Source of the DNA: Macrostomum hystrix
Taxonomy: Eukaryota > Animalia > Platyhelminthes
DNA: 64,000 bases
Assembly (NCBI GenBank): GCA_950097015.1
Contig: CATNEN010000025.1
Span: 7,998,001 to 8,062,000 of the forward strand
Reading direction: 5' to 3'
Of the stretch, positions 9,001 through 42,500 are shown one piece after another (the stretch's first letter is position 1; each line of letters starts with the position of its first letter). Both the position numbers and the translations under genes were made by a program. The notes under the pieces are model-generated. The model saw nothing but the letters and a program-made list of their open reading frames with translations. It was not told where the DNA came from and did no database searches.

Positions 9001-12000
9001 ATGAGTTATTGGGTTATTGAGTCGAAAACATTTTAAATGGGTCAAGAATGAGTCATCAAGTAGATGAGTTATTGGGTTATTGAGTCAGTACATTTTAAAT
9101 GGGTCAAGAATGAGTCATCAAGTAGATGAGTTATTGGGTTATTGAGTCAGTACATTTTAAATGGGTCAAGAATGAGTCATCAAGTAGATGAGTTATTGGG
9201 TTATTGAGTCAGTACATTTTAAATGGGTCAAGAATGAGTCATCAAGTAGATGAGTTATTGGGTTATTGAGTCAGTACATTTTAAATGGGTCAAGAATGGG
9301 TCATCAAGTAGATGAGTTATTGGGTTATTGAGTCAGTACATTTTAAATGGGTCAAGAATGAGTCATCAAGTAGATGAGTTATTGGGTTATTGAGTCAGTA
9401 CATTTTAAATGGGTCAAGAATGAGTCATGAAGTAGATGAGTTATTGGGTTATTGAGTCAGTACATTTTAAATGGGTCAAGAATGGGTCATCAAGTAGATG
9501 AGTTATTGGGTTATTGAGTCAGTACATTTTAAATGGGTCAAGAATGGGTCATCAAGTAGATGAGTTATTGGGTCATTGTGTCAAAAACTCTTCAAATGGG
9601 TCAAGAATGAGTCATCAAGTAGATGAGTTATTGGGTTATTGTGGGTCAAGAATGGGTCATTAAGTAGATGAGTTATTGGGTTATTGAGTCAGTACATTTT
9701 AAGTGGGTCAAGAATGGGTCATTAAGTGGATAATTTACTGGGTCACTAAAATTTTCCGCTATATCCGATGAAACAACTTTCTGAATCACAAAACATCGAC
9801 ATCGTCGAGATATTCAACGATTCTCGTCGGGGTAAACAACGAATATAGGCATATTTTTCTGCTCTAAAAATTTCCTAATGTAACCATGTCGGCTATTATA
9901 TTGCATTGGATATATTTGTCACCAGACCAGGGTCTTCGACAAGAACCGCTGGGCTTTGAAAGTGAGTTAGTTCATCGTAAAGGGGGAAAAATCGGATCCA
10001 TTTGGTTAGCTTTCACGAAAAAACGGTCACTCGGTTTGGGGCCTACTGCTCAAACAAGATTTTACTCACCTCTTTTCGAACTTGCTCCTTCTCGGCCGGC
10101 CGATCCTTGCCCACCTGAAATTTCAGCTCGCACCAGGCGATGGGCCGACCCTGTTCCCGGTCGTAGCCTCGATAGACTCGCTTGTAGGCGCCTTCGCCGC
10201 ATTTGATATTGTGCTTGATCCAACGGCCGCACGGACTGACGGCGATGCCGCGCTGTTTGAGCTGCAGCTCCATCTGGTGCCGGCGCCACATCTGCTCCTC
10301 TCGCTTCCTCTCCCGCTCTTTGGCTTTCTCTTCGCGAGACTTCACCGCCTTTTTCTCTCGCTCCTTGTCAACGGCGCCGGCTGGCATTGAAGAGGCGGCG
10401 GCGGACGATGACCCGGAAGCAGTAGAATGTGTCGGCAATGAGCCTGGAGCGATGTTCGAAGCCACGGCGGAAGCCGGAACGGAGGCGGTGACATATCCAG
10501 CGGCTATAGTCGCTGATGCCATTGTCGACGAAGCGGTCTCAATGACGATGACTGCGGATCCGCCAGCCGCCAAGGCGGGTCTCGACGGATCCGTCTCTTC
10601 TAAAATAGCTTCGTCAATTATGCCGGAGGCGGCAGCAGCCGCGGCGGCTGCGAAGGTCTTGACTGCTGGCGTCGGCGGCGGTGGCTTCGGCATGGCGACG
10701 GATGCCGGCCTGGATAAACACTCTGATTCATCAGCCTCCAGGTACTGTGCTTGTTGCTGCTGCTGCTTTTCATCATATTGATTCTCATGTTGATCAGCTG
10801 GCTGCTGCTGCTGCTGCTGCTGCTGCTGTGACAACTCGCCTTCAGATCTGTCTATGTTTGTCTCGCTAACAACGCGGCGTCTTCTGCAAGAATAAATATT
10901 TCACTTAATAATCAGTTTAAAGCATAAAACTAGAAGCTTCAAGAAATGGCATTGTCAAGAAATGACACTAGATTTCAAGAAGTAACACTCGATTTCAATA
11001 ATGGCACCAGATATAAGGAAATGGCGCCAGATATTAGGAAATGGCACCAGATATTAGGAAATGGCACCAGATATTAGGAAATGGCGCCAGATATTAGGAA
11101 ATGGCACCAGATATTAGGAAATGGCGCCAGATATTAGGAAATGGCGCCAGATATTAGGAAATGGCGCCAGATATTAGGAAATGGCACCAGATAAGGAAAT
11201 GGCGCCAGATATTAGGAAATGGCGCCATGTATTAGGAAATGGCACCAGATATTAGGAAATGGCACCAGATATTAGGAAATGCCACCAGATATTAGGAAAT
11301 GGCACCAGATATTAGGAAATGGCACCAGATATTAGGAAATGGCCCAGATATTAGGAAATGGCACCAGATATTAGGAAATGGCGCCAGATATTAGGAAATG
11401 GCACCAGATATTAGGAAATGGCACCAGATATTAGGAAATGGCACCAGATATTAGGAAATGGCCCAGATATTAGGAAATGGCACCAGATATTAGGAAATGG
11501 CACCAGATATTAGGAAATGGCACCAGATATTAGGAAATGGCCCAGATATTAGGAAATGGCACCAGATATTAGGAAATGGCGCCAGATATTAGGAAATGGC
11601 ACCAGATATTAGGAAATGGCACCAGATATTAGGAAATGGCGCCATGTATTAGGAAATGGCACCAGATATTAGGAAATGGCACCAGATATTAGGAAATGGC
11701 GCCAGATGTTAGGAAATGGCGCCATGTATTAGGAAATGGCACCAGATATTAGGAAATGGCGCCAGATATTAGGAAATGGCGCCATGTATTAGGAAATGGC
11801 ACCAGATATTAGGAAATGGCACCAGATATTAGGAAATGGCACCAGATATTAGGAAATGGCGCCATGTATTAGGAAATGGCGCCAGATATTAGGAAATGGC
11901 ACCAGATATTAGGAAATGGCACCAGATATTAGGAAATGGCACCAGATATTAGGAAATGGCGCCAGATATTAGGAAATGGCGCCAGATATTAGGAAATGGC

Positions 12001-12875
12001 ACCAGATATTAGGAAATGCCACCAGATATTAGGAAATGGCACCAGATATTAGGAAATGGCACCAGATATTAGGAAATGGCGCCAGATATTAGGAAATGGC
12101 GCCATGTATTAGGAAATGGCACCAGATATTAGGAAATGGCACCAGATATTAGGAAATGGCACCAGATATTAGGAAATGGCACCAGATATTAGGAAATGGC
12201 ACCAGATATTAGGAAATGGCCCAGATATTAGGAAATGGCGCCAGATATTAGGAAATGGCACCAGATATTAGGAAATGGCACCAGATATTAGGAAATGGCA
12301 CCAACAATAAAAATGACACCGCAGTTTTATAAAACAAACACAACAGAGCCCGCTCACTCTTTGGCAGCAGCAATTCCTACAGCCAATCTCTGCTGGAGGC
12401 CGCCGCTGCCGCTGCCGCCGACGCCGCCGCTGCCTCCGTCGACGCTCTCACCAGACGAAGCCAGCGGTTCAACTTGGCTGAGCACAGTCTCACGAAAGGG
12501 CACCCGGGCCAGCCTGCGTGGCCTAGACACGCCATGCTTGCCTTGGCCTTTGTGAGGCGGCCCGAGCGGACTCAGGCTGCTGCTGTTGTTGACAATGTCG
12601 TCGTCGGTTTTGGAATGCCTACGCCGCGTTGTCGGGCCGCCTTCGCCTAAAGACTCCAAAGATCTGGCGTAGCACAGGTGAACTTCACGTTCGGCTGAGT
12701 TCTGCTCGCCATTGTCCGCGGACTCGCCGGCGGACACCCTCAGCCTGATTGGCTCGTCTGTTGAAGTGTCCGCTGGCGACAGCTGCGGCTGCGGCGCGCT
12801 GCGACTGCACTGGCCGTCATCCTGGACAGGCTGGGTCACGTGACCCCGGTCTGTCCGCAGATCAGCGGCTGAAGA
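1..12875 (-). CDS. WNK-like Ser/Thr kinase, multi-exon, 3' end beyond window start
   Basis: Phase-consistent GT-AG exons: 12875-12358, 10883-10070, 8754-8489, 8058-7729, 2215-2020 (or 2092), 1490-1137, 530-<1. Motifs: SPCGRWIK..GEGAYKRVY (Lys in Gly-loop) and IAWCELK (Cys in place of the subdomain II Lys), which are WNK hallmarks; also HPNIVRYY, HRDLKPEN, DFG, YMAPEM. The post-kinase FRLVV..GFEFQL segment resembles the WNK autoinhibitory domain. Confidence 0.85.
555..960. repeat. 30-bp minisatellite (ATTATGGTATGTTCTGATTGGCTAGTATAG)
   Basis: About 13 tandem units, decaying to about 1070; WNK intron. Confidence 0.9.
1568..1925. repeat. About 26-bp composite minisatellite (CTTCTGATTGGTTGGCAGCTAAATCT variants)
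   Basis: Repeated CTGATTGGTTGG cores; WNK intron. Confidence 0.85.
2270..2463. repeat. Purine-rich 21-bp minisatellite, left half (split by the LTR element)
   Basis: GGTAGAGTGGAGGGGAGAGAA-like units that continue at 7411. Confidence 0.8.
2464..2694 (+). repeat. 5' LTR
   Basis: TG...CA termini with 6-bp inverted ends; TATAAAA-like motif near 2610; matches 7180-7410. Confidence 0.96.
2729..7069 (+). CDS. Gag-Pol polyprotein (Gag, two zinc knuckles, PR, RT, RNase H, integrase), 1446 aa from the first ATG downstream of the LTR
   Basis: Uninterrupted ORF. Knuckles CYRCGERGHASC and CHNCGKPNHLAKAC; protease DSGAS; RT ELDIRKAFYQ and VHDD; RNase H VDAS/EREALA/TDHRPL; integrase HTGH..CIYC, DFYG, TDNGPPF, ESNGATE. 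PR-RT-RH-IN order is Ty3/Gypsy. Confidence 0.96.
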   Translation: MATSYVSLPPPEPFLITHDPHNAGKRWNEWSARFADFIEASGIANENQKCKLLCYTAGKEVSDIIRELPKPRSDADGQEQEHTLQTIFKGLKQHFDDRKNIVYARYQFRLCVQQSGEKIEAWYSRLRTAAEPCEFGDLRNSLIRDQLVATCTSDKLRRRLLQEANISLEDALRKARAFEAAEEQAAEMEKTTESQVASVANRSQTASDKRRPHSEARQSQSQTCYRCGERGHASCDAAKDKICHNCGKPNHLAKACRQPRLSSNRVKQQIHANAYSTAPGDTASQDVFTLHREGIYPPDVSLKVQVGDQQLSMMIDSGASCSIMSKCTFKTLSRPHLRAPKSEVRAYGCASPLKILGVSDLQVHVGSASTVIPFYVMDGDGLTILGREPAFRLGVLKIQRLDSSGTEAVHSNSTASLSPQLQDILHRHREVFEGIGCIKGVQVKVQLSGDAVPVCHAPSRVAAHLRATVVDELKELERQDIIEAVKGPSAWVARMVVVPKADGGVRICQDLRDLNAFVVPEKQQIPTLDEVTEEMSGAKLFSELDIRKAFYQIPVHEDSRHLFTFSTPLGLMRLKRLSMGFTNASEILQRVMLGILSGIDGVRWVHDDVIVYAADIKQHHERLNVCLQRLGEFGITLNKDKCKFAKPAVDFLGMHLSAKGIQPAAEKIQAMQDFRQPANVSEIRSFLGTANFLAKFISGYADVSAPLRQLTKKGQPWDWTASHTKAFNSIKSAIANADTLAFFDRKRHTELLVDASPIGLGAILTQKQPDGSSRPVAYASRALSPVEQRYAQIEREALAIKFACLKFEHYLAGDPNFTVVTDHRPLVPLFKPGSRPPPRIERMALRIQHLRFTLLYRPGPANPADLLSRQPLPESRPNIGEVLDEAHVNAVSTGAVPKGFTIQQIREAARTDAEMQAALGAIRTGNWNTLSPVQRSFKSISSELTENDGVLLRGDLIVIPEALRRPILQLAHTGHLGADRTLKRLQTKVWWPKMYSDCEVFVKCCIYCQAAATHVHQTPLKPTEMPDGPWQLLGMDFYGPVQGHMLLVTTDLYSKYPEVDVMQSTTAGSVTQHLRRLFSRHGIPAEVITDNGPPFNSAEFRNFLTEYGVHHRLICPLHPESNGATERVNRSIGKVIKTAIAEGRNWREALDDWLLAFRTTPHRATGRTPAELLMGRAINDGIPASRQPTVTGFDHQAVRDWSRQYTREMKRAFDKRNTAKEHRVVPGTMVLRKQQARIKTQLPFETQPWTVEEVRGDTCILRRGQQSCMRHVTQLRPMFPPASPPAGPPAGPPASPPAGPPASPPAGPPAGPPAGPPAGPPAGPPAGPPAGPPAGPPAGPPAGPPAGPPAGPPAGPPAGPPAGPPAGPPAGPPAGPPAGPPAGPPAGPPAGPPAGPPAGPPAGPPAGPPSPAGPPPPVGQDTGQENDAVALRRHPRAARDKPKRYK
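6566..6980 (+). repeat. 12-bp tandem repeat CCCGCCTGCCGG inside the pol ORF, encoding (PPAG)n
   Basis: About 33-34 near-identical in-frame units after the integrase C-terminus. Confidence 0.95.
7180..7410 (+). repeat. 3' LTR
   Basis: Same sequence as 2464-2694; preceded by the purine tract GGGGGGGAGAAG. Confidence 0.96.
7411..7625. repeat. Purine-rich 21-bp minisatellite, right half
   Basis: Period 21 (7441, 7462, ...). Confidence 0.88.
8262..8408. repeat. 15-bp minisatellite (AAGGGGAAATCCCAC)
   Basis: About 9 units. Confidence 0.9.
8875..9730. repeat. 62/63-bp minisatellite
   Basis: Unit GAGTTATTGGGTTATTGAGTCAGTACATTTTAAATGGGTCAAGAATGAGTCATCAAGTAGAT, about 13 copies. Confidence 0.92.
11000..12303. 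repeat. 20-bp minisatellite (CCAGATATTAGGAAATGGCA/CG)
   Basis: About 65 units. Confidence 0.95.
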
Positions 12876-25959: not shown

Positions 25960-27336
25960 GAGAGAGTTAGGACACGGAAGAGATAGGACACTAGATACAG
26001 GAGACAGGGAGAGATGAGACACTGGAGAAATGAGACAGGGGAGAGATAAGACAGGAGAAAGATGAGACAGGGGAGAGATGAGACACGGGAGAGATGAGAC
26101 ACGGGAGAGATGAGACAGGGGAGAGATGAGACAGGGGAGAGATGAGACACGGGAGAGATGAGTCAGGGGAGAGATGAGACACGGGAGAGATGAGACACGG
26201 GAGAGATGAGTCAGGGGAGAGATGAGACACGGGAGAGATGAGACACGGGAGAGATGAGACACGGGAGAGATGAGACACGGGAGTGATGAGTCAGGGAGAG
26301 ATAAGACACGGGAGAGATGAGACACGGGGAGAGATGAGACACGGGAGAGATAAGACACGGGAGAGATGAGACATAGGGGAGAGATGAGACACAGGGGAGA
26401 GATGATACACGGGAGTGATGAGTCAGGGAGAGATAAGACACGGGAGAGATGAGACACAGGGGAGAGATAAGACACAGGGGAGAGATGAGACACGGGAGAG
26501 ATGAGACACGGGAGAGATGATACACGGGAGTGATGAGTCAGGGAGAGATAAGATACGGGAGAGATGAGACATAGGGGAGAGATGAGACACGGGAGAGATG
26601 AGACACGGGAGAGATGATACACGGGAGTGATGAGTCAGGGAGAGATAAGACACGGGAGAGATGAGACACAGGGGAGAGATGAGACACAGGGGAGAGATGA
26701 GACACAGGAGAGATAAGACACGGGACAGATGAGACATAGGGGAGAGATGAGACACAGGGGAGAGATGAGACACGGGAGAGATGAGACACGGGAGAGATGA
26801 TACACGGGAGTGATGAGTCAGGGAGAGATAAGATACGGGAGAGATGAGACATAGGGGAGAGATGAGACACGGGAGAGATGAGACACGGGAGAGATGATAC
26901 ACGGGAGTGATGAGTCAGGGAGAGATAAGACACGGGAGAGATGAGACACAGGGGAGAGATGAGACACAGGGGAGAGATGAGACACAGGGGAGAGATGAGA
27001 CACAGGGGAGAGATGAGACACGGGAGAGATGAGACACGGGAGAGATGAGACACGGGAAAGATGAGACATAGGGGAGAGATGAGACACAGGGGAGAGATGA
27101 GACACGGGAGAGATGAGACACGGGAGAGATGAGACACGGGAGTGATGAGTCAGGGAGAGATAAGATACGGGAGAGATGAGACAGGGGAGATATGAGACAC
27201 AGTGGAGAGATGAGACACGGGAGAGATGAGTCAGGGAGAGATAAGACACGGGAGGGAGCTAGACACAGGGGAGAGATGAGGCAGTGGATAGCTGAGACAT
27301 GGGCATTGGCCGACAGGAGGGTGATTGCCGACTCTT
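25960..27336 (-). mobile_element. Degenerate MITE family A copy with about 1.3-kb 16-bp array (GAGAGATGAGACACGG on +)
   Basis: The array unit is the reverse complement of the family A unit. The right flank ATGGGCATTGGCCG...GATTGCCGACTCTT resembles the reverse-complemented MITE left end and TIR. Confidence 0.65.
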
Positions 27337-27974
27337 TTTCGGCGGGAGTAAAAGAGACGACAATTGTCAAATAAAAAGTGCAGCAGAAAAGGCTAGTCAC
27401 CAAGCAGTTTCAACCGGATCGGCCCCTGTCAGACGTTTGAGTCAGAAGCGATCAGCTGGTCACGAAAAGCCCGTCCCCCAGGCGGCCAGTTTAATTCCCC
27501 CACCCTCCTTCCCAGGTCTGCCTATCCGCGACTCGATTCCTCGTTTAGCAGAATCTAATTAATGTGCCTTCGCCGTGGGGCTAGCCGACCGATTGACTTC
27601 GCTCGCTGCCCTATCGCACGCACAGCCGGGCTGATTGACTTCGGAAAAAGCCTGGCCTTTAAAAGAAAAGGATTCCTCACTACAGGAGTGGGGCGCGTGG
27701 GAAAAAAACTGTCGAGTGAATTTAATGTGAGGATTTTCTAGAAAGATTTTAAATGACTAAGGATTTTTAGATTTTCTATAGTTAATTATGCTCAGTCTCA
27801 GATATGGGAACTTTTTACAGGCTGATAATACAGCGGAATAGGGATTTGGGATACTTTTGAGATTCCAGTTCTAAGTTAAGATTAGTTGATCCACCTGATT
27901 TACTGATCTTCGGTGTCCACTAACCACACACAAGGTTATAAATAAATTAAATAAAGAGGAAGGCAAACAAACAA

Positions 27975-28021
27975 ACGGATGGGCAGGTAGACAGACAGAC
28001 AGACAGACAGACAGACACACT

Positions 28022-28061
<40 letters not shown>

Positions 28062-28081
28062 CACAGACAGACAGACACAAT

Positions 28082-28169
<88 letters not shown>

Positions 28170-28212
28170 CACTGACAGACAGACAGACAGACAGAAAGAC
28201 AGGCAGACAGAC
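27975..28212. repeat. (GACA)n microsatellite
   Basis: Direct reading. Confidence 0.95.
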
Positions 28213-28849
28213 GGACACACAGGCCGGTAGACACAGATACAAGCATGAAAATGTGTCAATAAATGAAGTCATAACATAGCAAAGTAAATAGCCTTTTGTC
28301 ACATACTCAAAAGCTCTAGCGTTAATGAACCAGACAGAAATAGGACACTTTTAATTTTGTTTCCAATCGGTTTACGAAAGATTATTGACTGCGCCAGTCA
28401 GCTTGGTCGCAAAATTATCTAAACAATCATAAAAACTGATTGCATTACAGAGATAACATTAGGCTCATACAGTGGTAATAGACAGCTAATAGTTGAACAG
28501 ACAGTTGCAGTCGGTGGAAACAAGAAGGGCTTTGGCGATCGTGCGAACAAGAGGGTCAAGAGAGCTAGAGACGCAGCTAGAGCAGAACCAAACTAAAAAA
28601 AGTAACGAAAACTCAGACTTCGAGTACGTCAATGTCAAATTATCAAAATATCAAAACTGTGCCCACTTGTCTGCGTAGAAAACAGCAAATTTCAGTTTTC
28701 AATTGCATGTCTAGGCAACCAAATCGGCTCCGATGTGTGGGTCTGTGGGTCAGACAGTGCGTTGAACTCACAGACGAGCTACAAGTAAAAGCATGAACTT
28801 CGCGAGTCAAGTGAGTCAAAAATTATTTGAATCAGGTTGATAAATACTC

Positions 28850-29090
28850 AGGTCAGGTGGGTCAACTAGGCTAGGCTTGGGTCAGGTGGGTCAACTGATC
28901 AAGGCTTGGGTCAGGTGGGTCAATGATCTAGGCTTGGGTCAGGTGGGTCAACTGATCTAGGCTTGGGTCAGGTGAGTCAACTGATCTAGGCTTGGGTCAG
29001 GTGGGTCAACTGATCTAGGCTTGGGTCAGGTGGGTCAACTGATCAAGGCTTGGGTCAGGTGGGTCAACTCATCTAGGCCTGGGTCAGGTA
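28850..29090. repeat. 29-bp minisatellite (CTGATCTAGGCTTGGGTCAGGTGGGTCAA)
   Basis: About 8 units. Confidence 0.9.
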
Positions 29091-30069
29091 GGTTTGTATT
29101 TTCGCCATAAAATACAACAGGACTGACCCAATGACCCAAAAAATCGAACATTTAATTTTTCAGGTGGATAAAAAGGTGTAAAATGTGAGCTTGGATTAAA
29201 ATAGCGCGGATTGAAAGTAATTTTTTCTGTCAGATGTGGCTTTTTAACGCTGTCCGATTAGAATAGATTAATAAGTCAAGCGACAGAAGAAATCTACGCA
29301 ACTGTATACATATTGAGCATAAGAGCCGGTTTGCAAAAAAAGCTTTTAAAGCCTCCGTTTAGAGGGTTTATATAAAAGCTTAAGCCTCATAAAAGCTATT
29401 AATATTTTTATTAGAAAAGTTACCTTAAAGATCTCACATGTAAATCGGCTCTTTTTAAACAGCACCGTGATATTTTGTATAGTTGATTTGCAAGATACGC
29501 ATGTTACTACTGGCCTAAATTTTTATAGTAGTATTATTATACCATATTGCCAAAGGAATGCCGCTTATAATAATATATATTAAATTTCTAAGATGAAATT
29601 AAGGGACAGGCACGGCAAAAAGCGGAAAGTGCAGAATAAGAAGAAAAGCAAAATAAGATACTACTAATTTACTTATTCTACTACTGACAATGGTGCTAAG
29701 TAGTAAGCAAATAAAAGTCAATACAAAACGAATATAGAGTTCTCGAATTAATTTTTTTTCAATTTTGTGACAGATGATACACAATACGTATCCTCAGTAC
29801 TGTAGATTCATACTATTATAAACAGCAATTTGTTTTAGACGCTAACCCTTAACAGTAACAAAAACACAATTTCAAATAGGAATATATAGTAGTAAAACAG
29901 AACTGCTGCGAATGGATTAGAACACGGGAACAGGGGCGGCAGGCACACAATGAGAGAAAATATAGAATTGAAACTGTCACACTGCATCATTCTGCAGGAT
30001 TCTGTCTAGATACGAATCACAAACAAAAATAGTTTAAATTGATCATTCAGGCGTCACGTTAAGCAAGTG

Positions 30070-31730
30070 ATCGGGATCAACCTGTCGTCATTGGGATCAA
30101 TCTGTCGACATTGGGATCAACCTGTTGACATTGGGATCAATCTGTTGACATTGGGATCAATCTGTTGACATTGGGATCAATCTGTTGACATTGGGATCAA
30201 TCTGTTGACATTGGGATCAATCTGTTGACATTGGGATCAATCTGTTGACATTGGGATCAATCTGTTGACATTGGGATCAACCTGTCGTCATTGGGATCAA
30301 TCTGTCGACATTGGGATCAACCTGTTGACATTGGGATCAATCTGTTGACATTGGGATCAATCTGTTGACATTGGGATCAACCTGTTGACATTGGGATCAA
30401 TCTGTTGACATTGGGATCAATCTGTTGACATTGGGATCAATCTGTTGACATTGGGATCAATCTTTCGACATTGGGATCAATCTGTTGACATTGGGATCAA
30501 CCTGTTGACATTGGGATCAATATGTTGACATTGGGGTCAATCTGTTGACATTGGGATCAATCTGTTGACATTGGGATCAATCTTTCGACATTGGGATCAA
30601 CCTGTTGACATTGGGATCAATCTTTCGACATTGGGATCAATCTGTCGACATTGGGATCAACCTGTTGACATTGGGATCAATCTGTCTACATTGGGATCAA
30701 TCTGTCGACATTGGGATCAACCTGTTGACATTGGGATCAATCTGTTGACATTGGTATCAATCTGTCGACATTGGGATCAACCTGTTAACATTGGGATAAA
30801 TCTGTCGACATTGGGATCAATCTGTCGACATTGGGATCAACCTGTTGACATTGGGATCAATCTGTCGACATTGGGATCAACCTGTTGACATTGGGATCAA
30901 CCTGTTGACATTGGGATCAATATGTTGACATTGGGGTCAATCTGTTGACATTGGGATCAATCTGTTGACATTGGGATCAATCTTTCGACATTGGGATCAA
31001 CCTGTTGACATTGGGATCAATCTTTCGACATTGGGATCAATCTGTCGACATTGGGATCAATCTGTCGACATTGGGATCAACCTGTTGACATTGGGATCAA
31101 TCTGTTGACATTGGGATCAATCTGTTGACATTGGGATCAACCTGTTAAGATTGGGATCAATCTGTCGACATTGGGATCAACCTGTTGACATTGGGATCAA
31201 TCTGTCGACATTGGGATCAACCTGTTGACATTGGGATCAACCTGTTGACATTGGGATCAATATGTCGACATTGGGATCAATCTGTTGACATTGGGATCAA
31301 TCCTGTCGACATTGGGATCAATCCTTTCGACTATTGGGATCAATCTGTCGACATTGAGATCAATATGTCGACATTGGGATCAATCTGTCGACATTGGGAT
31401 CAACCTGTTGACATTGGGATCAATCTGTTGACATTGGGATCAATCTGTCGACATTGGGATCAACCTGTTAACATTGGGATCAATCTGTCGACATTGGGAT
31501 CAACCTGTTGACATTGGGATCAATCTGTTGACATTGGGATCAACCTTTTGACATTGGGATCAACCTGTTGACATTGGGATCAATATGTTGACATTGGGAT
31601 CAATCTGTTGACATTGGGATCAACCTGTTAACATTGGGATCAATCTTTCGACATTGGGATCAATCTGTCGACATTGAGATCAATATGTCGACATTGGGAT
31701 CAATCTTTCGACATTAGGATCAATCTACTG
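30070..31730. repeat. 20-bp minisatellite (TTGACATTGGGATCAATCTG), downstream of the SPTLC1 stop
   Basis: About 80 units. Confidence 0.95.
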
Positions 31731-31816
31731 ATTTTGGGATCGATCAATCGGAATCGGATTTCAGTTTTCTTAACCAGCAAAACAAGAGATCGAGATCTAG
31801 TCCGCAGCATGATTGT

Positions 31817-34800
31817 TCACTCCTTTTTACCAGCCAGCAGTCCTTTGGCGTAAGACTTCAAGAATTGCAACAGCAAGTCGACCTCACTGTCGGCATGATT
31901 GCAGTTGATCGACAGTCGAATCGACGGCTCCGGTTGACCGAGATCTTGGGCGACGTAGCGGGCCACAGTCAGCAGTAGGCCGGCTTTTGACGCGGCGGAG
32001 CTGGCGGCCTCCAAGGCTGGCAAACTGTTGCCAATGCCCGAAGCCAAACGCAGGTGCTTGATCGGGGATATTGGCACACCTTCAACAGTCCACAGGTTGG
32101 CTAGTTCGCTAACTAAACGCTGGTGAATCTGTTCGCTAATGGATTTCAACCGGCGCGTCCTCTCGCCGCTCATCTCGTCCATCATGGTCAGAGCCTCGCA
32201 GGCGGCGGCGGCTAGCATCGGCGGCAGGCTGGCCGAGAAGCAGTAGCCCAGACCGCTGAGGCGCTGATGATCCACCACGTATCTGGGCGATGTTTCGGTT
32301 GATGGCTTAAATAAGGGGTCTGCACACTCCGGCCCGCGGGCCAGATGCGGCCCTCGAAACTCCCAAATACGGCCTGCTGCCCCTTCCGACTCCTACAGTA
32401 TCCTGCTTCATCTTTCCCTGTGTCATCTCTCTTCAGTCTCGTGTCTCCCGTGTCTCATCTCTCCCGTGTCTCGTCTCTCCTGTGTCTCATCTTTCCCGTG
32501 TCTCATCTCTCCCGTGTCTCCTCTTTCCCGTGTCTCCTCTTTCCCGTGTCTCATCTCTCCCCTGTCTCCTCTATCCTGTGTCTCATCTCTCCCGTGTCTC
32601 CTCTTTCCCGTGTCTCATCTCTCCCCTGTCTCCTCTATCCTGTGTCTCATCTCTCCCCTGTCTCCTCTATCCTGTGTCTCATCTCTCCCCTGTCTCCTCT
32701 ATCCTGTGTCTTATCTCTCCCGTGTCTCATCTCTCCTGTCTCTCATCTCTCCCGTGTCTCATCTTTCCCGTGACTCATCTCTCCCATGCCTCATCTCTCC
32801 CGTATCTCATCTCTCCTATGTCTCATTCTCCCGTGTCTTATATCTCCCCTGTCTCATCTCTCCCTTGTCTCATCTATCCCGTGTCTCATCTCTCCTGTGT
32901 CTCATCTCTCCCATGTCTCATCTCTCCCATGTCTCATCTCTCCCGTGTCTCATCTCTCCCGTGTCTCATCTCTGCCGTGTCTCAACTCTCCCGTGTCTCA
33001 TCTCTCCCGTGTCTCATCTCTCCCCTGTCTCCTCTATCCTGTGTCTCATCTCTCCCGTGTCTCATCTCTCCCCTGTCTCCTCTATCCTGTGTCTCATCTC
33101 TCCCCTGTCTCCTCTATCCTGTGTCTTATCTCTCCCGTGTCTTATCTCTCCTGTGTCTTATCTCTCCTGTGTCTTATCTCTCCTGTGTCTTATCTCTCCC
33201 GTGTCTCCTCTATCCCGTGTCTAATCTCTTCCTAATCTCGTATTTCTATAGTCGAATCGGCACGCTGTCGTCTTTTAGGTTCTCTCTTTTCGTGCCTTTT
33301 TTCGATAATCATATCAGAGCAAAATAGAAACAATCGATACTCCGTAGAAATATAACGGAGGGTATTTCAAATACCCACATTTTTTTCTTTATCTTCTAAA
33401 AGTTTCTACTAATCGCCATGAAAATGCAGAACACGGGCTAGAATTATCCGCTCTAGCCGATGAAACAACTTCCAGAATCACAAAACAGCATCATCTTCGA
33501 GATATTCAAGGATTTTCGTTGGGTTGTCTCGTATTAGCCTATTTTGGAAATATCATACCGCTTCCCAAATCCCCATATCAATAATAAAGTATAACTAACC
33601 AGACAAAAAAAATATCACTAGATACTAAATTCCCAGTTGCAAAGCGATTCCACTAAAAACCAGAGCTCACCGCAGCTAATAAACTCACTTGGTGCCAACC
33701 ACAAAGCCGCCCTGTGTAGCCAGGGCATTCTCGATACCAGCCGCGATCAAGTCCACATCCTGGACGCTGACGTTGGCCTCCTCGCAGGCGCCCCGGCCGG
33801 TGGCGCCAAGAGTGCCAAGGCTGGCGCTTTCCTCCAGGAACAGGCGCACCTTGTACTTGTACTTTAGGCGCACCAGCTCGGCCAGTGGACAGATGTCGCC
33901 GCAGTTGACGTAGAGCCCCTCCGCGACGATGAATTTTCTAGTGACGCGCGCCTTCTTTGGATCACGCCGATCGTGCTCCGCCTGGCGCTGCAGCAGCTCC
34001 TCCAGGTGGGCGACGTCGTTGTGCTTGAAGCGAACGATCTTGCTGCGCGAGGCTTCCAGGCCTGATTTAGTGCGGACCAAGGTGGAAAAGGTGGGATCCT
34101 CTATTAACAATTTAAACACTCTCTGCCACTGATGTACATACTCTCTATCCACTGATGTACATACTCTCTATCCACTGATGTACATACTCTCTATCCACTG
34201 ATGTACATACTCTCTATCCACTGATGTACATACTCTCTATACACTGATGTACATACTCTCTATCCACTGATGTACATACTCTCTATCCACTGATATACAT
34301 ACTCTCTATCCACTGATGTACAGAACTCTCTATCCACTGATGTACATACTCTCTATCCATTGATGTAAACTCTCTATCTACTAATGTACATACTCTATAT
34401 CTACTAATGAACACACTGTCTACTAATGTACATACTGTCTGTCTACTAATGTACACATTGAACCAACTAATGTACACATTGAACCAACTAATGTACACAT
34501 TGAACCAACTAATGTACACATTGAACCAACTAATGTACACATTGAACCAACTAATGTACACATTGAACCAACTAATGTACACATTGAACCAACTAATGTA
34601 CACATTGAACCAACTAATGTGCACATTGAACCAACTAATGTACACATTGAACCAACTAATGTACACATTGAACCAACTAATGTACACATTGAACCAACTA
34701 ATGTACATACTGTATTTACTAATGCAGTACATACCGCCTATGAGTGACTAGACATCCTCCTCGAATGTACAAGTAACAAGCTACAAGGCTAAAATGAGCA

Positions 34801-35686
34801 AGAGGGCACAGAATGTGTCGCACCCTGTTGAATAGCAAAGCAGCACCGTTCGTCGGCAAAGATAATATCGTGACGCTTGGCATAGGAAGGAATGGCCGAT
34901 GCGATGGTAGAGAATCCGTAGGAGTACAGGACAGCCTCTTCGCAGCCGAAGAATTTGGCTAGCTGCTCCTCCAGCTGCAGGTGGACGTCCATAGTGCCGT
35001 AGAAGCCGCGTGGGCCGCAGCTGCCAACTCCGTAGTGACGAAGGCTGGACAAGGCGCGGTCGCGAATTCTGGATTCGCCGACAAAGTCAAGAAAATTGCC
35101 GGTGGCAAAGTTGACCAGGGTGCGGCCGTCCGCGTACGTTACGCTGCGGCCCACCTGTAAATTTAGAAAGCCAAACTGGCTATTATACTTTTCGACTTTT
35201 TTGGTCGAATATGACTGAGAGTTTTATCTCTGTGAGTGTACATTGGGGGTAGAGTTTTATCTCTCTTCGATGTACATTAGAGGTAGAATTTCGGCTCTCT
35301 TTGATGTACATTGGGGGGTAGAGTTTTATCTTTCTTCGAGTGTACATTAGGGGTAAAACAAAAAATGAAATAGGAAACACAAAGGGTAGGCGCACCTGAG
35401 ACGTGGCGCATCGCTGGTAACTGGCCAGCAAGTTCTCGTCGGGCTGAACATCGCCGCTGACGAGCGGCTCGGGGCGCCACTCCGCAATCAGCTGGTCCTC
35501 TTCGGCTTTAGTCAATCGATCGCCGCGTTTTCTAGAGGGCAAAAACGAACGCTGAAAAAGTAGGCCGACTATAAATAGAATTAAGCAGCCTTCAAACACC
35601 AGGTGATAGGTTGGGGCGCTATATATAGCATCGATGAGGTCCTTGAACTCCCAGGACACTTCTGATTCGGCCATGGTCATCAACAT
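31817..35686 (-). CDS. SPTLC1: Serine palmitoyltransferase subunit 1 (LCB1)
   Basis: Exons 35686-35396, 35154-34824, 34061-33689, 32282-31817. N-terminal TM segment; motifs [65 protein letters not shown]. Confidence 0.93.
32313..33290 (+). mobile_element. MITE family A copy, right TIR lost, expanded 16-bp array
   Basis: Left end AAGGGGTCTGCACACTCCGGCCCGCGGGCCAGATGCGGCCCTCG aligns with 41870. Same repeat unit over about 32410-33230. Shares the AGGTTCTCTCTTT subterminal motif. Confidence 0.85.
34125..34730. repeat. Compound 23-bp (CTCTCTATCCACTGATGTACATA) then 21-bp (TAATGTACACATTGAACCAAC) minisatellites
   Basis: Periods 23 and 21 read directly; SPTLC1 intron 2. Confidence 0.9.
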
Positions 35687-35939
35687 ATTGATGGCGACGG
35701 CTTGCAGACTAACTGAAAGTGATTGCGGTATGAGAGTAAACATTACCTATTTGAAACGACTGTTGGATATTTTGAAATTTTGAACAATTTCCCTTAACAA
35801 GTTAGAGGTAACCACTTTACATGTGGAATTATGAGTATGCAGGCTTGCTGGGGTAGAAAATATTTCGGTGCTAAGTGTACATTCCGGAAGGAAGTTTGGT
35901 CGGTGCTGGATTTTAATTTGACATTAGGATTTCCGTTAA

Positions 35940-36172
35940 TATGAGTGTACATTAGGGGTAGAGTTTGGTTGACAGTGAGTGTACATTCGGGGTAGAGTTT
36001 GGTTGATAGTGAGTGTACATTCGGGGTAGAGTTTGGTTGATAGTGAGTGTACATTCGGGGGAGAGTTTGGTTGATAGTGAGTGTACATTCGGGGTAGAGT
36101 TTGGTTGATAGTGAGTGTACATTCGGGGTAGAGTTTGGTTGATAGTGAGTGTACATTCGGGGTGGAGATTGC
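35940..36172. repeat. 34-bp minisatellite between XPD and SPTLC1
   Basis: GAGTGTACATTCGGGGTAGAGTTTGGTTGATAGT, about 7 units; related degenerate units at 35215-35350. Confidence 0.9.
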
Positions 36173-36599
36173 TTGTAGGGGAATTTACCATATGGTCATC
36201 ATCTTTAAATATATATTCTCTCTAATACAATACCTTGACATCTGCGTTTTATCTTATTATTTCCGGTCGCCAAAAGAAGTAAATCAAATATCTGATAAAA
36301 ATAAAAACAACTGTTCATATCGAACTTTATTGATGTATTAAACCTTAGAATAATGCAATTCTCTGGTTAAAGTCATATTCAGGCACAGGAATTATTTAGA
36401 AAGTTCCTTTTTACTTTTAAAAGTTTCAATGTGAACGAGATGAAACATACACTGGTATGTTTAGCGTTGCTAAAATGAAGCAACAAAAATGTCGAAAGTT
36501 TTTTGAACTGCGAGATGAGTTCGGAGTGAAAATAGTTCGTATACCGGGATCTAGAATGCCAAAATGAAGCTGGTTAACCAAAATAATCAATTTAAAAGA

Positions 36600-39500
36600 T
36601 TAAGCAGCTTCATTAGCGTAGCGTCGTTGCAATTCAATGTCGCGCAGCTGTTCCAGAGTCAGCAGGGACACGCCCAGCTGGTCCTGCCTAGTGAACGGCT
36701 GGGCCATCTGCTTGAGAAAACGCCTGGAGATCTGTACGGCTTCGTCCACAGACAAGTTTAGCACAGCGTCGCTGAGGTTCTCCTAAAAAATTCAGTTTTC
36801 AGTGGTGAAAGTAAGTATAATTAAAGTATGGACAGCACAAATCAAAGGCCAGGTTGAAGGTTAAAAAATGATTTATGTTCACGCACATGGCCGACGATTA
36901 ACTTGACTGTGTAAAACTTCCTGCAATAGAAATCTCTTTCTACCACCAAAAAGCGAGGCATATCTGAGGTTCTCAATCTCTGCTCAACTAGGCTAAAGTG
37001 AATAGATAGGGCGCACAGTGTTAAGAGTAATTCATAATTCAGCTAGATAGCCAAAAATATGACTCCATATTTTGCTGGAGTGGCTTTGAATGTGACAAAG
37101 TTCAAAATTTAAATAGGCGGACCATCGATATTTAGCCAGCGCACTTGGCAAATGTTCTACTTATTTATTTTATTTGCTATTTGTTAGATTTATAACGAAG
37201 CATAGTCCTAGCTTGCTGCTAAAACTCATTGACGCCATTGCATAGCAAGTTGACAAAAAATTTATACCGCATCACGTTTTTCAACACCTCATCTAAACAG
37301 TTACTATTTAGTACTTTGCGTCTTAGTTCGGAATGTACTTTTAATTAAAAAGATCTTAAATTGCAGTTGGTGTACGTAAGGTACAGAGAGTTTTGGAGTG
37401 AGGTTGGTTAGAGGCTAGTGTACGTAAGGGATAGAGAATTTTGGAGTGAGGTTGGTTAGAGGCCAGTGTACGTAAGGGATAGAGAATTTCGGAGTGAGGT
37501 TGGTTAGAGGCTAGTGTACGTAAGGGATAGAGAATTTCGGAGTGAGGTTGGTTAGAGGCTAGTGTACGTAAGGGATAGAGAATTTCGGAGTGAGGTTGGT
37601 TAGAGGCTAGTGTACGTAAGGGATAGAGAATTTCGGAGTGAGGTTGGTTAGAGGCTAGTGTACGTAAGGGATAGAGAGTTTTGGAGTGAGGCTGGTCAGA
37701 GGCCATGTTGGGGATAGAGAATTTCGGAGTGAGTTAGAGGCTAGTGTACGTGAGAGATAGAGAGGTTGTGTAGTGAAATATAACAGAATCATCAGAGTAA
37801 ATCACGAGGGAAAGAAATTCTAGTAGATTTCAGCATACCTGAATCCATCTAGGCAGTTTCGTCCTCTTGTCGGCCCTAGCGAATCGCTTGTCGGCAAACA
37901 GCATAATGCCGTAGTCTGTCTTGCCACGCAGTGCCCGACCAACGCATTGGGCCGCGTGTCGCATAGCGTCGAATGTAAGAAAGTCATTCTCTCGAATGTG
38001 AAAATGCTCGCGCAGATAGTCTAGTCGAGTTTTTAAAATTCGACTCTGCGTATAGACATACGGTACACCGAACATGATGACGCAACGGCCAAGGTGATGG
38101 TCGAAGTCGATGCCTTCAGACACTTTGCCTCGAGCGACTGACAATAAAATGGCACCACGACCGTTCTCGCAGGCTCGCTGATAATTGTAGAGGGCTATGC
38201 TAGTCTCCTGGGCGTCCTGTGTTTCAATAAACACCAGCTTGTACTTTTGCACCTGATCTATTATCTTGTGCTCATACCAGGAGGCAAAAATTGTCTCCAG
38301 GTACAGGTAGCTAGGAAAGAAGCACACTAGGCCGTCTGGTACAACGCGAGCCATCTCCAGCAGCAGGCTGCCGTAATTGCGCATCACGGCGGGATCTTCG
38401 CGACTTTCGTAGCGGGAGGTGATTGTTACCTGTGCCGGGCGGTAGCATTGGTAAGTGTTCTTATGATATGACCAAAAAAGTGGCAAGCAATACAAACTAA
38501 ATACGACCTTTTTGTTTCAGGATACAAGGATTAGAAAAAACGACCCCTTAATTTTTTCGTATATGTCTAGCAAAAAAGAATATTATTTTAGTATATAGAA
38601 CTAGCAAAACATGACCCCCTGCTAAGAATCTCTTGCTGGAGTATTTCACACAAAACATTCTACGATAAAAAGCCTTTATTTATCTGAAATTAATATACCT
38701 GATCGTTACCCTTGGCAACTATCATGGGACAGATGCACTGTCTGGCTAAGGTGACAGTGAACGACACCATATTGACTGGACGAAAGTCCAAAATGCGCGG
38801 ATACATCTCCAATGGTGACAGAGTACCAGATGTAACTAGAACGGTTTGAAAGCGAGCGAACACTGGCCGGACAGCAATGCTAGCGTCCATGCAGGTCAGA
38901 TGCATGATAGGATTAATCACCGTAGGCGCTCTATCGTCGAATGGCTCCACTAGGAAACAGAAGCCGCGCAGATAGGTTGCTAGGAGCGTAGCCAGGTTGG
39001 CAACGCGAAATAGGCTGCCAAGTTCCGGAGATTCAGCCACTTCCAGTGTCGCTAACAGGCTGCGCAAGCGTTCGTGACAGAAGCGCAACGGCTTGCGATC
39101 TAGGCAGACGCGTTCGGCGCAGTCGCGCAAAAATGCGGCTGGACTCTCGGACACGACGTGTACAACTCGAAGGCGCAGCTTCAAGTATTCCAGGAAGCGA
39201 CGCAGGAAGGCAAGAAAGTGCTCCGCTGTGCGAATATTTCCGGGCACAGCTTCGCGCAGGACCTTTGGTGGGAAGGGAGGCAAGTCGTGAGTAGCGAATG
39301 TGAATCTTATCTTCACAATAGAACTACCGTAATATAAATTTAATTGCTTCAAATTTACAAATATTATTGGTTTTCAACTTCTAATTCAAACTAGGTAACT
39401 TCAATTTCGCCCACGGGGAGGGGGGATGCTCTTGTGTATTGGGTAACCGATTGAGTAACTTCAATTTCGTCCGCGAGAAGTTACTTAGTTTAAAAAAGAA

Positions 39501-42500
39501 GTTGAAAACCAAACAGTGAAGTGCAAAGATGCAAAGTACAAAGTTAAGCAAGATGCTCAAAGATATCTCAAACATAACTAACAAAGAGAACTTTCTTAGA
39601 TATAATCTACAGAGATTTTAGAGCGAATCTACAGAGATTTTAGAGCGAATCTACAGAGATTTTAGAGCGAATCTACAGAGATTTTAGAGCGAATCTACAT
39701 AGATCTAAGAGCGAATCTACACAGATCTAAGAGCGAATCTACACAGATCTTAGAGCGAATCTTAGAGAACTCTTAAAAAAGCGGAGAATCTTAAAGAAGC
39801 ATAGAAGTGCACCGCGCACACTAACCTGATCAGGCAGCACAGGATTAGCCAGAATAAGATCTGTCTCCCTGGCAGTCTGGGCCTCTCTAAGATTATTAAC
39901 CAGTCGATTGTATTCCTCTTGCAATTTGGCAGCGTCCTGTTGTTTGATCTCTCTGACACGATTTTGCAAACTGTTCAGGCCTAACTGAGCGCGATCTAAT
40001 GAGCGTCGACTCAAGGTAACGCTCATTGATTCAATGCAAACATTGTCAATATTGTGAGCCTCGTCGAATACAACAATGCTAGACTTAGGCAGCTGTTTGG
40101 AGACTAATTCGGATATCTTGGGATCTAGCAGATAGTGATAGCTGTACACTATGATGTTGGCCGTTGACATGGAGTAGCGAGCGAAGAAGTACGGACAGAA
40201 GCCTTTTCGTCGACCGTAGGCCTAGAAACAAAATAAGGAGGAACTAGCTTAATAGTTGCATTTGTAACAACAAAATATATTGAGAATACTTATACTAGTA
40301 AGAGAGGAGCAGAAGAGAGGGGAGAAAAGACAGGAAGGAAAGCAGAAGAAAGGACGGGAGAAAAATACAGGAAGACGAGCAGAAGACAGGACGGGGGAGC
40401 AGAAGACAGGAAGGGGAGCAGAAGACAGGAGGGGATCAGAAGACAGGAAGGAGAGCAAAGGGGAGCAGAAGACAGAAAGGGGAGCAAAGGGTAGCAGAAG
40501 AGAGGGGAGAAAAAGACAGGAAGGGGAGCAGAAGACAGGAGGGGATCAGAAGACAGAAAGGGAGCAAAGGGGAACAGAAGAGAGGCGAGAAAAGATAGGA
40601 AGGGGAGCAGAAGACAGAAAGGAGAGCAGAAGACAGAAAGGGGAGCAAAGGGGAACAGAAGAGACGCGAGAAAAGACAGGAAGGGGAGCAGAAGACAGAA
40701 AGGAGAGCAGAAGACAGGAGTGGGAGCAGAAGACAGGAGTGGGAGCAGAAGACAGGAGTCGGAGCAGAAGACAGAAAGGAGAGCAGAAGACAGGAGTCGG
40801 AGCAGAAGACAGAAAGGAGAGCAGAAGACAGGAGTCGGAGCAGAAGACAGGAGTGGGAGAAGACAGGAGTGGGAGCAGAAGACAGAAAGGGAATAAATAA
40901 ATAAAAGTGATCTCAAAAGTAGAAAGGATTAAGTACTACAAATCAAACTGATAAAAGCAGCCTTCCAAACCTTCAGATCATCCAGATTGTAAACCCCAGG
41001 CGGCAGCAGAAATTCCCGACCATGGGCGTCAAATTCTTCGTAAAACCGACAGCCCGGAGGTCCATCAGCCTCTGAATCGGCTGCTGCGGAGGCGTTGACA
41101 GCGGCGTGACGCCGGCGATCGCGAACAAAGCTGGCCGTCAGCTGATGACAGGCGCTGTCTATGGCCCTACCATCGCCGGTGTTGCCTTCCAAAACATCCG
41201 GATTAACGCAGAGATTCTTGCGCGAACTCAACGCCATGCCAGTTAGATTTAAACTGACGCCACTCTTCGCGTAATAATCAAACAATGTTTTCATTTCTTC
41301 TACAACTTTCTCCAACTCTGGCACTGTGCGCGAGCAATAGACCAATTTGCTGACATGCTCCGGACAATGATGCAAAAAGGCCACGGCTAGGGACAGGATT
41401 GTGATAGTCTTGCCTGTGCCTGAGGGCATTTCTAGTACACAATGACCCTGTCGAATCGTGAGTGAGTGACTAACTTGCTTTATTGTTGGATTTGCTTAAC
41501 CCTTTGTTGCCAGAAGTACAGAATCTTATGATTTTACCTTGGCGTCAATGCTTCTTTTGAACTCCACCATGTAGGAGTACTGCTCAGGATAGATATACTC
41601 ATATGGGAAGAGAACTGGTAAGCCATCGACATTCAACCTAAAAATATCATAGCATGGTAGAAATGTAATTTTTCAGTATTTAAAATCTAAGTCTACAAAC
41701 TGACTATAAAAGCTCGGAAGCATAGCTAATAAGTTCCTGAAAAACCGAATCATTTTTGTCTCACTTTATTATTCTATATAGCTATCAGAAGTTGTGTTGA
41801 ATATCTAACTAAGCAGTCTTTGAAATAGGTAGCAACTAAGTTGTATCAGTCAATTTAGTTGGTATATATCAGGGGTCGGCAAACTCCGGCCCGCGGGCCA
41901 GATACGGCCCTCGAAGCTCCCGAATCCGGCCCGTTGCCCATTCTGACATCTACAGTGTCCTGTTTCATCTCTCTCGTGTCTAATCTCTCCCGTGTCTCAT
42001 TGCTCTCGTGTCTAATCTCTCCCGTGTCTCATCTCTCCCGTGTCTCATCTCTCCCGTGTCTAATCTCTCCTGTGTCTCATCTCTCCCGTGTCTAATCTCT
42101 CCCGTGTCTAATCTCTCCCGTGTCTGATCTCTCCCCCGTCTAATCTCTCCCGTGTCTCATCTCTCCCGTGTCTCATCTCTCCCGTGTCTCATCTCTCCCC
42201 TGTCTCATCTCTCCCGTGTCTCATCTCTCTCGTGTATCATCTTTCTGTGTCTCATCTCTCCCCTATCTCATATTTATACAGTCAATGCGTAAAGGTTCTC
42301 TCTTTGGCCTGCCAGCAAATAAGTTTGCCTACCCCTGGTATATATGATTATCTGGACATTTCATTTTGTTATACTTAGCTAGGCCCAAGCTAGTTCTATA
42401 TAGGCTATGAAACTGAACAAATTTCATGTAGCAATAACTTTAAAACATTAGTTTTTATTTTGAAAAAAATTAATGAGAGATGGCCCAAAACGCAAATTGG

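Follow-up and report, generated by a model that had tools for sequence, protein, structure and literature searches.

A 16-bp minisatellite carried by a Buster-type hAT miniature inverted-repeat transposable element family in Macrostomum hystrix

Three arrays of one 16-bp unit and the genes around them

The window analysed here is a 64-kb stretch of the Macrostomum hystrix genome (contig 25, positions 7998001-8062000), which lies within an assembly of 220 Mb in 42 contigs. A first-pass annotation of this DNA had described three tandem arrays with a common unit, one of them inside a MITE (miniature inverted-repeat transposable element), and had proposed that such an element delivers a repeat seed, which grows in place while the element decays. 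By use of Tandem Repeats Finder, one 16-bp unit was indeed found to be common to three period-16 arrays in the window. Of the proposal itself, the delivery of the array by the element and its change in place were upheld by the analysis of further copies from the genome, while growth tied to decay was not.

The element at 41870-42337 was confirmed as an intact MITE, whose parts are given on the forward strand. It is framed by the target site duplication (TSD) GTATATAT, which was read directly on the left (41862-41869) as well as on the right side (42338-42345); both copies are the same and fit the family target nnnTAnnn. The left terminal inverted repeat (TIR) CAGGGGTCGGCAAACT (41870-41885) and the right TIR, the inverted complement of CAGGGGTAGGCAAACT (42322-42337), were also read directly. 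The TIRs are 16 bp long with one mismatch between the left and the inverted right one, and the 16-mer CAGGGGTCGGCAAACT is the start of all 51 intact copies sampled. Adjacent to the left TIR resides a unique subterminal part (41886-41960) containing the 20-mer used for the genome-wide count of left ends. The complete left end, i.e., TIR and subterminal part (41870-41964), showed 96.8% identity to the family consensus. It is followed by the minisatellite with 19.5 units (41961-42271, Tandem Repeats Finder), in which no private repeated variants were found, and by the right subterminal part (42272-42321), which has a 14-bp deletion compared to the consensus. The array of this copy (304 bp, annotated as about 0.3 kb) belongs to the lower third of the intact-copy lengths.

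The description of the second copy (32313-33290, forward strand) was affirmed as well: its left TIR is degenerate, the subterminal sequence is kept and the flanks are 87-89% identical to the consensus. The left end (32313-32407) exhibited 89% identity and three changes in the TIR, and the 8 bp preceding it (GCTTAAAT) are consistent with the target consensus. Its 0.8-kb array of 51.5 units (32408-33229) harbors a private 32-bp higher-order unit, which occurs seven times in two clusters. On the right, only a subterminal remnant (33235-33289) corresponding to the consensus positions 3-57 of 89 was found (87% identity); neither the right TIR nor a second copy of the TSD is present. The third array is an orphan on the reverse strand (25971-27303) that comprises 81.5 units and for the most part consists of a private block present seven times. 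For this inverted copy (annotated as 25960-27336), the 1.3-kb array was verified, but the TIR remnant was not distinguishable from chance. Local alignment of the flanks with the family ends against shuffles gave z 2.3 and p 0.03 (about 1 in 30) for the left flank, and z 1.6 and p 0.09 (about 1 in 11) for the right one. The candidate TIR remnant at 27306-27336 was rejected, as its alignment was matched by about 1 in 30 shuffles. Three arrays of one 16-mer in one window are not a matter of chance; the unit belongs to a family dispersed throughout the genome.

The older copy at 32313-33290 takes up most of an intron in a gene for a class I/II aminotransferase on the reverse strand. One exon of this gene (31820-32278) covers the profile positions 239-360 of PF00155, and the upstream exon (33688-34152) covers positions 95-232. 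The intact copy resides approximately 440 bp upstream of the DEAD_2 exon of an XPD/ERCC2-type helicase gene (37833-41429, reverse strand), which is composed of three exons (DEAD_2, HBB, Helicase_C_2) with array-filled introns between them.

The MITE family and its superfamily

With three mismatches allowed at most, the left-end 20-mer of the element matched 1,053 places in the genome (control, 13), and the right-end 20-mer matched 768 places (control, 3). The surplus of left ends may mean that loss affects the right end more frequently, or that a second element exists which shares the left end only. A run of three perfect units was found 5,447 times compared to zero for the control. From the best-scoring matches, 51 copies were taken that extended from TIR to TIR, of which 50 remained once one member of a duplicate pair was removed. 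They are 275-1544 bp in size and consist of a 95-bp left end, the internal minisatellite with its 16-base unit and an 89-bp right end. The array was present in each of the 51 intact copies. The only open frames in the elements are those running through the repeat and, hence, the family has no coding capacity.

Perfect 8-bp TSDs were detected in 41 of the 51 copies, and most of the others revealed a 7/8 match. All 41 perfect TSDs contain TA at positions 4-5; other biases concern T at position 2 (24 TSDs) and A at position 7 (31 TSDs). This corresponds to nnnTAnnn, which is given in PMC3517528 as the target consensus of Buster-family hAT elements. The TIR of the family is 16 bp long and reads CAGGGGT(C/A)GGCAAACT. 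Its first 11 bp match the TIR of the Drosophila MITE Mar, CAG(G/A)GGTAGGC, as stated in the part of that paper used here (PMC3517528). The 8-bp TSDs, their central TA and the TIRs starting with CAGGGGT support a classification as a non-autonomous MITE family of the hAT type, and more precisely of the Buster type, in agreement with the hAT assignment made at first pass. A literature search with the TIR string of the family found no paper. The family is young and abundant; about 1,050 left ends are recognizable in 220 Mb.

A hAT dimerisation domain was found at no fewer than 40 places in the genome, e.g., on contig 1 (13005386), contig 10 (2390865) and contig 25 (3198154). Candidates for active hAT transposases are multi-copy open frames of 816 amino acids (five equal-scoring places) and 601 amino acids (four places).

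Length of the arrays, their change in place and the loss of ends

The arrays of the 50 intact young copies were 91-1359 bp long with a median of 458 bp, and those with consensus-identical flanks already spanned 394-780 bp. Within this set, array length showed a slight negative correlation with flank divergence (Spearman rho -0.30, p 0.03). Similar lengths, 155-1360 bp with a median of 466 bp, were determined for 28 further elements on contig 1, which had been defined by pairing the coordinates of left-end and right-end 20-mers that matched perfectly. Array content had played no part in the choice of seven old or unflanked arrays: bystanders in fetched loci, one left-end match and the two older copies of the window. 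Their lengths were 120, 210, 262, 328, at least 718, 822 and 1333 bp, giving a median of 328 bp. Old and young arrays could not be told apart by length (Mann-Whitney p 0.78), while the spread tended to be larger in the old ones (Levene p 0.056). Decayed carriers with short arrays (120, 210 and 328 bp) do exist; these are the copies L069, L050b and L048b. Thus, the claim that the array is longer in the more decayed copies, which had been derived from the three arrays of the window, fails as a rule in the sampled copies.

Arrays change in place after insertion, and older copies show local amplification. The loci L062 and L063 are recent segmental duplicates on contig 1, whose flanks are approximately 99% identical and whose arrays differ by a single indel of 48 bp (three units) only. 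In another duplicate pair, L035 and L036 on contig 9, there were 17 clustered differences in the array versus one in about 1.3 kb outside. Within the sample, arrays accordingly change faster than flanks. In the two older arrays of the window, private variants with multiple substitutions are repeated 7-10 times. The array 25971-27303 contains seven instances of a 20-base variant in which several changes are linked, and a 25-base variant is present seven times, in two clusters, in the array 32408-33229; neither of them was found in any of 67 other loci. We also determined the private-repeat fraction, defined as the share of an array made up by 24-mers that were restricted to it and seen in it at least three times. 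This fraction was about zero in young intact arrays of up to 893 bp, and values of 0.16-0.49 were determined for the long arrays that were decayed or orphaned. Since old copies with very short arrays were encountered, loss of units occurs as well. The L062/L063 duplication is located at about 222.9 kb and 236.3 kb of contig 1, i.e., some 13 kb apart. The duplicated segment includes an orphan array of the 16-mer; at a distance of 0.6 kb from it, a diverged CT-rich 15-16-mer forms a second, inverted array of 0.6 kb. CT-rich repeats unrelated to the 16-mer (L066a, L062b) were excluded from the array set.

In three copies (L028, L042 and L060), one flank is 99-100% identical to the consensus, while on the other side the array passes directly into unique DNA without a second copy of the TSD. 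L067 has a 2.76-kb array with flanks of 97% and 93% identity and lacks the right TIR only. Orphan arrays start and stop in differing phases of the unit. The unique DNA at the array edge, the missing TSD copy and the varied phases together indicate breakpoints within or beside the array and not gradual substitution. A different kind of change was noticed in the young copy L009 (contig 5, at about 5.209 Mb). Here, the right TIR has 12 unrelated bases in place of its final 6 bp, and directly behind them stands the TSD copy ATCTAGAT that was expected. This points to a small terminal rearrangement and not to a truncation.

The first 100 three-unit matches in genome order fall into eight arrays on contig 1 (0-1.45 Mb), seven of which are independent. 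At five of these seven array-chosen loci, no similarity to either end of the MITE was found within 3-4 kb. This majority disagrees with the first-pass annotation, which had tied its proposal to MITE flanks around most arrays of the 16-mer; the fraction comes from a sample that favors long homogeneous arrays and may differ among all arrays. The remaining two loci comprise one with only a left end of 75% identity, and one with both flanks and no right TIR. A second carrier family was tried as a source of the orphan arrays and rejected, since an all-against-all comparison of 600-bp flanks disclosed nothing shared but one segmental duplication. Intact copies contain on average 1.06 perfect three-unit runs each, so that approximately 1,050 copies account for only about one fifth (20%) of all 5,447 genomic runs. 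The locus with the 75% left-end relic, L064 (contig 1, 314.6-317.0 kb), harbors an array of 2.35 kb, in which 65% of the units are the exact family consensus. This value is 27% next to the flank and rises to about 85% at the flankless end.

As a whole, these data are probably best explained by a Buster-type MITE family that spreads the array, whereupon drift in length and loss of ends take place independently of each other. A hAT transposase would move the element in trans by cut and paste, and its insertion would duplicate 8-bp nnnTAnnn targets and in this way spread the array. The array then gains and loses units, at times amplifying privately mutated blocks; as shown by the copies described above, its length drifts in both directions, with a spread that grows with time. 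Breaks within or beside the array would take away one end along with its TSD copy and the adjacent host DNA, a mechanism suggested by the pattern observed at the copies with one end; such a loss may happen before the other end has departed from the consensus. Repeated loss of ends, or possibly the insertion of array-only fragments, would leave behind the orphan arrays, which probably account for the bulk of the 16-mer DNA that is perfectly homogeneous. The order seen in the window (0.3 kb in the intact, 0.8 kb in the half-decayed and 1.3 kb in the orphan copy) would then be one draw from this process and not a rule.

The competing assumption, that a short seed array is present at landing and grows steadily as the ends decay, so that array length measures the age of a copy, is suggested by the ordering of the three window copies, by the concentration of private amplified variants in decayed and orphan arrays, by the lack of an end in every array above 2 kb and by L064 with its 75% flank beside 2.35 kb of repeat. 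We nevertheless regard it as very improbable, because copies with consensus flanks already contain 394-780 bp and intact ones up to 1359 bp of array, the correlation with flank divergence is negative, decayed copies have arrays of 120, 210 and 328 bp, old and young lengths do not differ (p 0.78), and ends are gone from copies that match the consensus at 99-100% in their other flank. Alternatively, the orphan arrays may never have been MITEs on site. The 16-mer would spread alone, for example by excised circles or by copying from another array during break repair, exchange between loci would keep it at the consensus, and the MITE would be just one of its carriers. The five of seven array-chosen loci that are flankless on both sides and have no common flanking sequence are consistent with this, as are the proportion of perfect units (37-65% in orphan arrays versus 24% in MITE arrays), the homogeneity gradient of L064 climbing toward its orphan end, and the approximately 80% of perfect three-unit runs beyond typical intact copies. 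However, there is a graded series from loss of the TIR over loss of one flank to loss of both, which includes young half copies; selection for perfect units alone enriches homogeneous arrays, and the units become degenerate toward the array edges within the MITE, suggesting that the repeat was born within the element. We consider such an independent spread, through circles or templated insertion, unlikely. A related and rather unlikely possibility is that the minisatellite has escaped its vehicle. In that case, most of the homogeneous 16-mer DNA would lie in orphans that are seeded or renewed without a transposase (by array-only fragments or copying between loci), old arrays would be held at the consensus, and the array itself would provoke the breaks that strip the ends.

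Some points weigh against the preferred explanation by a MITE family with subsequent independent drift and end loss. At least the right TIR is missing from each copy with one of the longest arrays (2.35, 2.76 and 3.29 kb), and 1.36 kb was the maximum among the intact copies. Hence, a weaker form of the relation between length and decay survives, in which the upper tail of the length distribution belongs to immobile copies. The combination of a weak flank and a homogeneous array in L064 is left unexplained by simple drift in place, and missing flanks may reflect the insertion of array-only DNA instead of a deletion. For an autonomous partner with the family TIRs, the hAT open frames are candidates only. 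Furthermore, the samples are small and were differently ascertained: the intact set was drawn from the best-scoring matches, the array-chosen sample required three perfect units and by this favored long homogeneous arrays, and only seven old copies are free of a bias by array content.

Known MITE-borne repeats and the other repeats of the window

Tandem repeats derived from MITEs were the subject of a 2022 review (PMC9659126), which in the part used here lists miDNA4, Xstir on Xmix, (GTCY)n in Lepidoptera and satellites of ants and bivalves. The course outlined there for miDNA4 of Xenopus tropicalis (Scalvenzi and Pollet 2014) begins with a monomer born inside a MITE and proceeds through a burst of transposition to amplification and homogenisation (PMC9659126). 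An internal array with a variable number of units, amplification in place and arrays freed from their ends are all encountered in the family of M. hystrix as well. On the other hand, miDNA4 is referred to as a Tc1/mariner-type MITE (PMC9659126), whereas the family studied here has Buster-type hAT ends and 8-bp TSDs, and it is characterized by a 16-bp unit and arrays of 0.1-3.3 kb within gene-rich DNA. Xmix/Xstir of Xenopus laevis and the lepidopteran (GTCY)n are likewise MITE-borne repeats with lineage- or locus-specific expansion, according to the same part of the review (PMC9659126). Xstir, however, is derived from the TIR region, while the present array is internal between two unique ends, and (GTCY)n is a hitchhiking microsatellite in contrast to the 16-mer reported here (PMC9659126).

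By its ends, the family resembles Mar, a Buster-type MITE of Drosophila willistoni. CAG(G/A)GGTAGGC in Mar faces CAGGGGT(C/A)GGC in M. hystrix, the TSDs are 8-bp nnnTAnnn sequences and many copies with intact TSDs exist in both, in a comparison based on TIR and TSD alone (PMC3517528). An internal minisatellite is not mentioned for Mar in the part of that paper used here (PMC3517528). A minisatellite within a MITE is also described for Porphyromonas gingivalis in the corresponding part of PMC4596501, there in a bacterial element. The MITE-borne tandem repeat is already known as a process; what is new is this family with its Buster-type hAT ends. It provides a case with many copies, in which a transposon-borne repeat can be measured after landing, as copies can be dated by flank divergence, intact insertions are recognized by their TSDs, and the change of arrays is visible in paralogous pairs. 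In this sample, the breakpoints point to breakage at the array, and not slow decay, as the cause of end loss, and to a repeat that outlives its carrier. This has a bearing on the origin of dispersed satellites and on the instability of the genome around intronic arrays.

Altogether, 39 tandem arrays make up 41% of the 64-kb window. Flanking TIRs above the null were only found for the intact MITE copy and for none of the 38 others. Two further arrays (11000-12303 and 30073-31745) gave matches at their own locus only in the 220-Mb genome. Arrays restricted to a single locus cannot be explained by a multi-copy vehicle with a ready-made seed. The mechanism that had been put forward at first pass for the private arrays of the window has therefore to be abandoned: one array out of 39 has flanking TIRs, and the two that were tested are single-locus. 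These other arrays arose in place from unique sequence. The building of minisatellites is a general tendency in this genome, which the MITE array shares and does not cause. The load of single-locus minisatellites in the genome (41% of the window), which the MITE family does not explain, is the more interesting question. Single-locus minisatellites appear to be built at a very high rate in this genome.

Minisatellites are also associated with a Ty3/gypsy-type long terminal repeat (LTR) retrotransposon in the window (2645-7069, forward strand). It comprises an unbroken gag-pol open frame of 1474 amino acids with the domains zinc knuckle, protease, reverse transcriptase, RNase H and integrase. 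One and the same 21-bp minisatellite flanks the frame on both sides (2268-2463 and 7411-7617), probably within the two LTRs. A 12-bp array with 32 copies and 98% matches (6569-6955) resides within the open frame itself.

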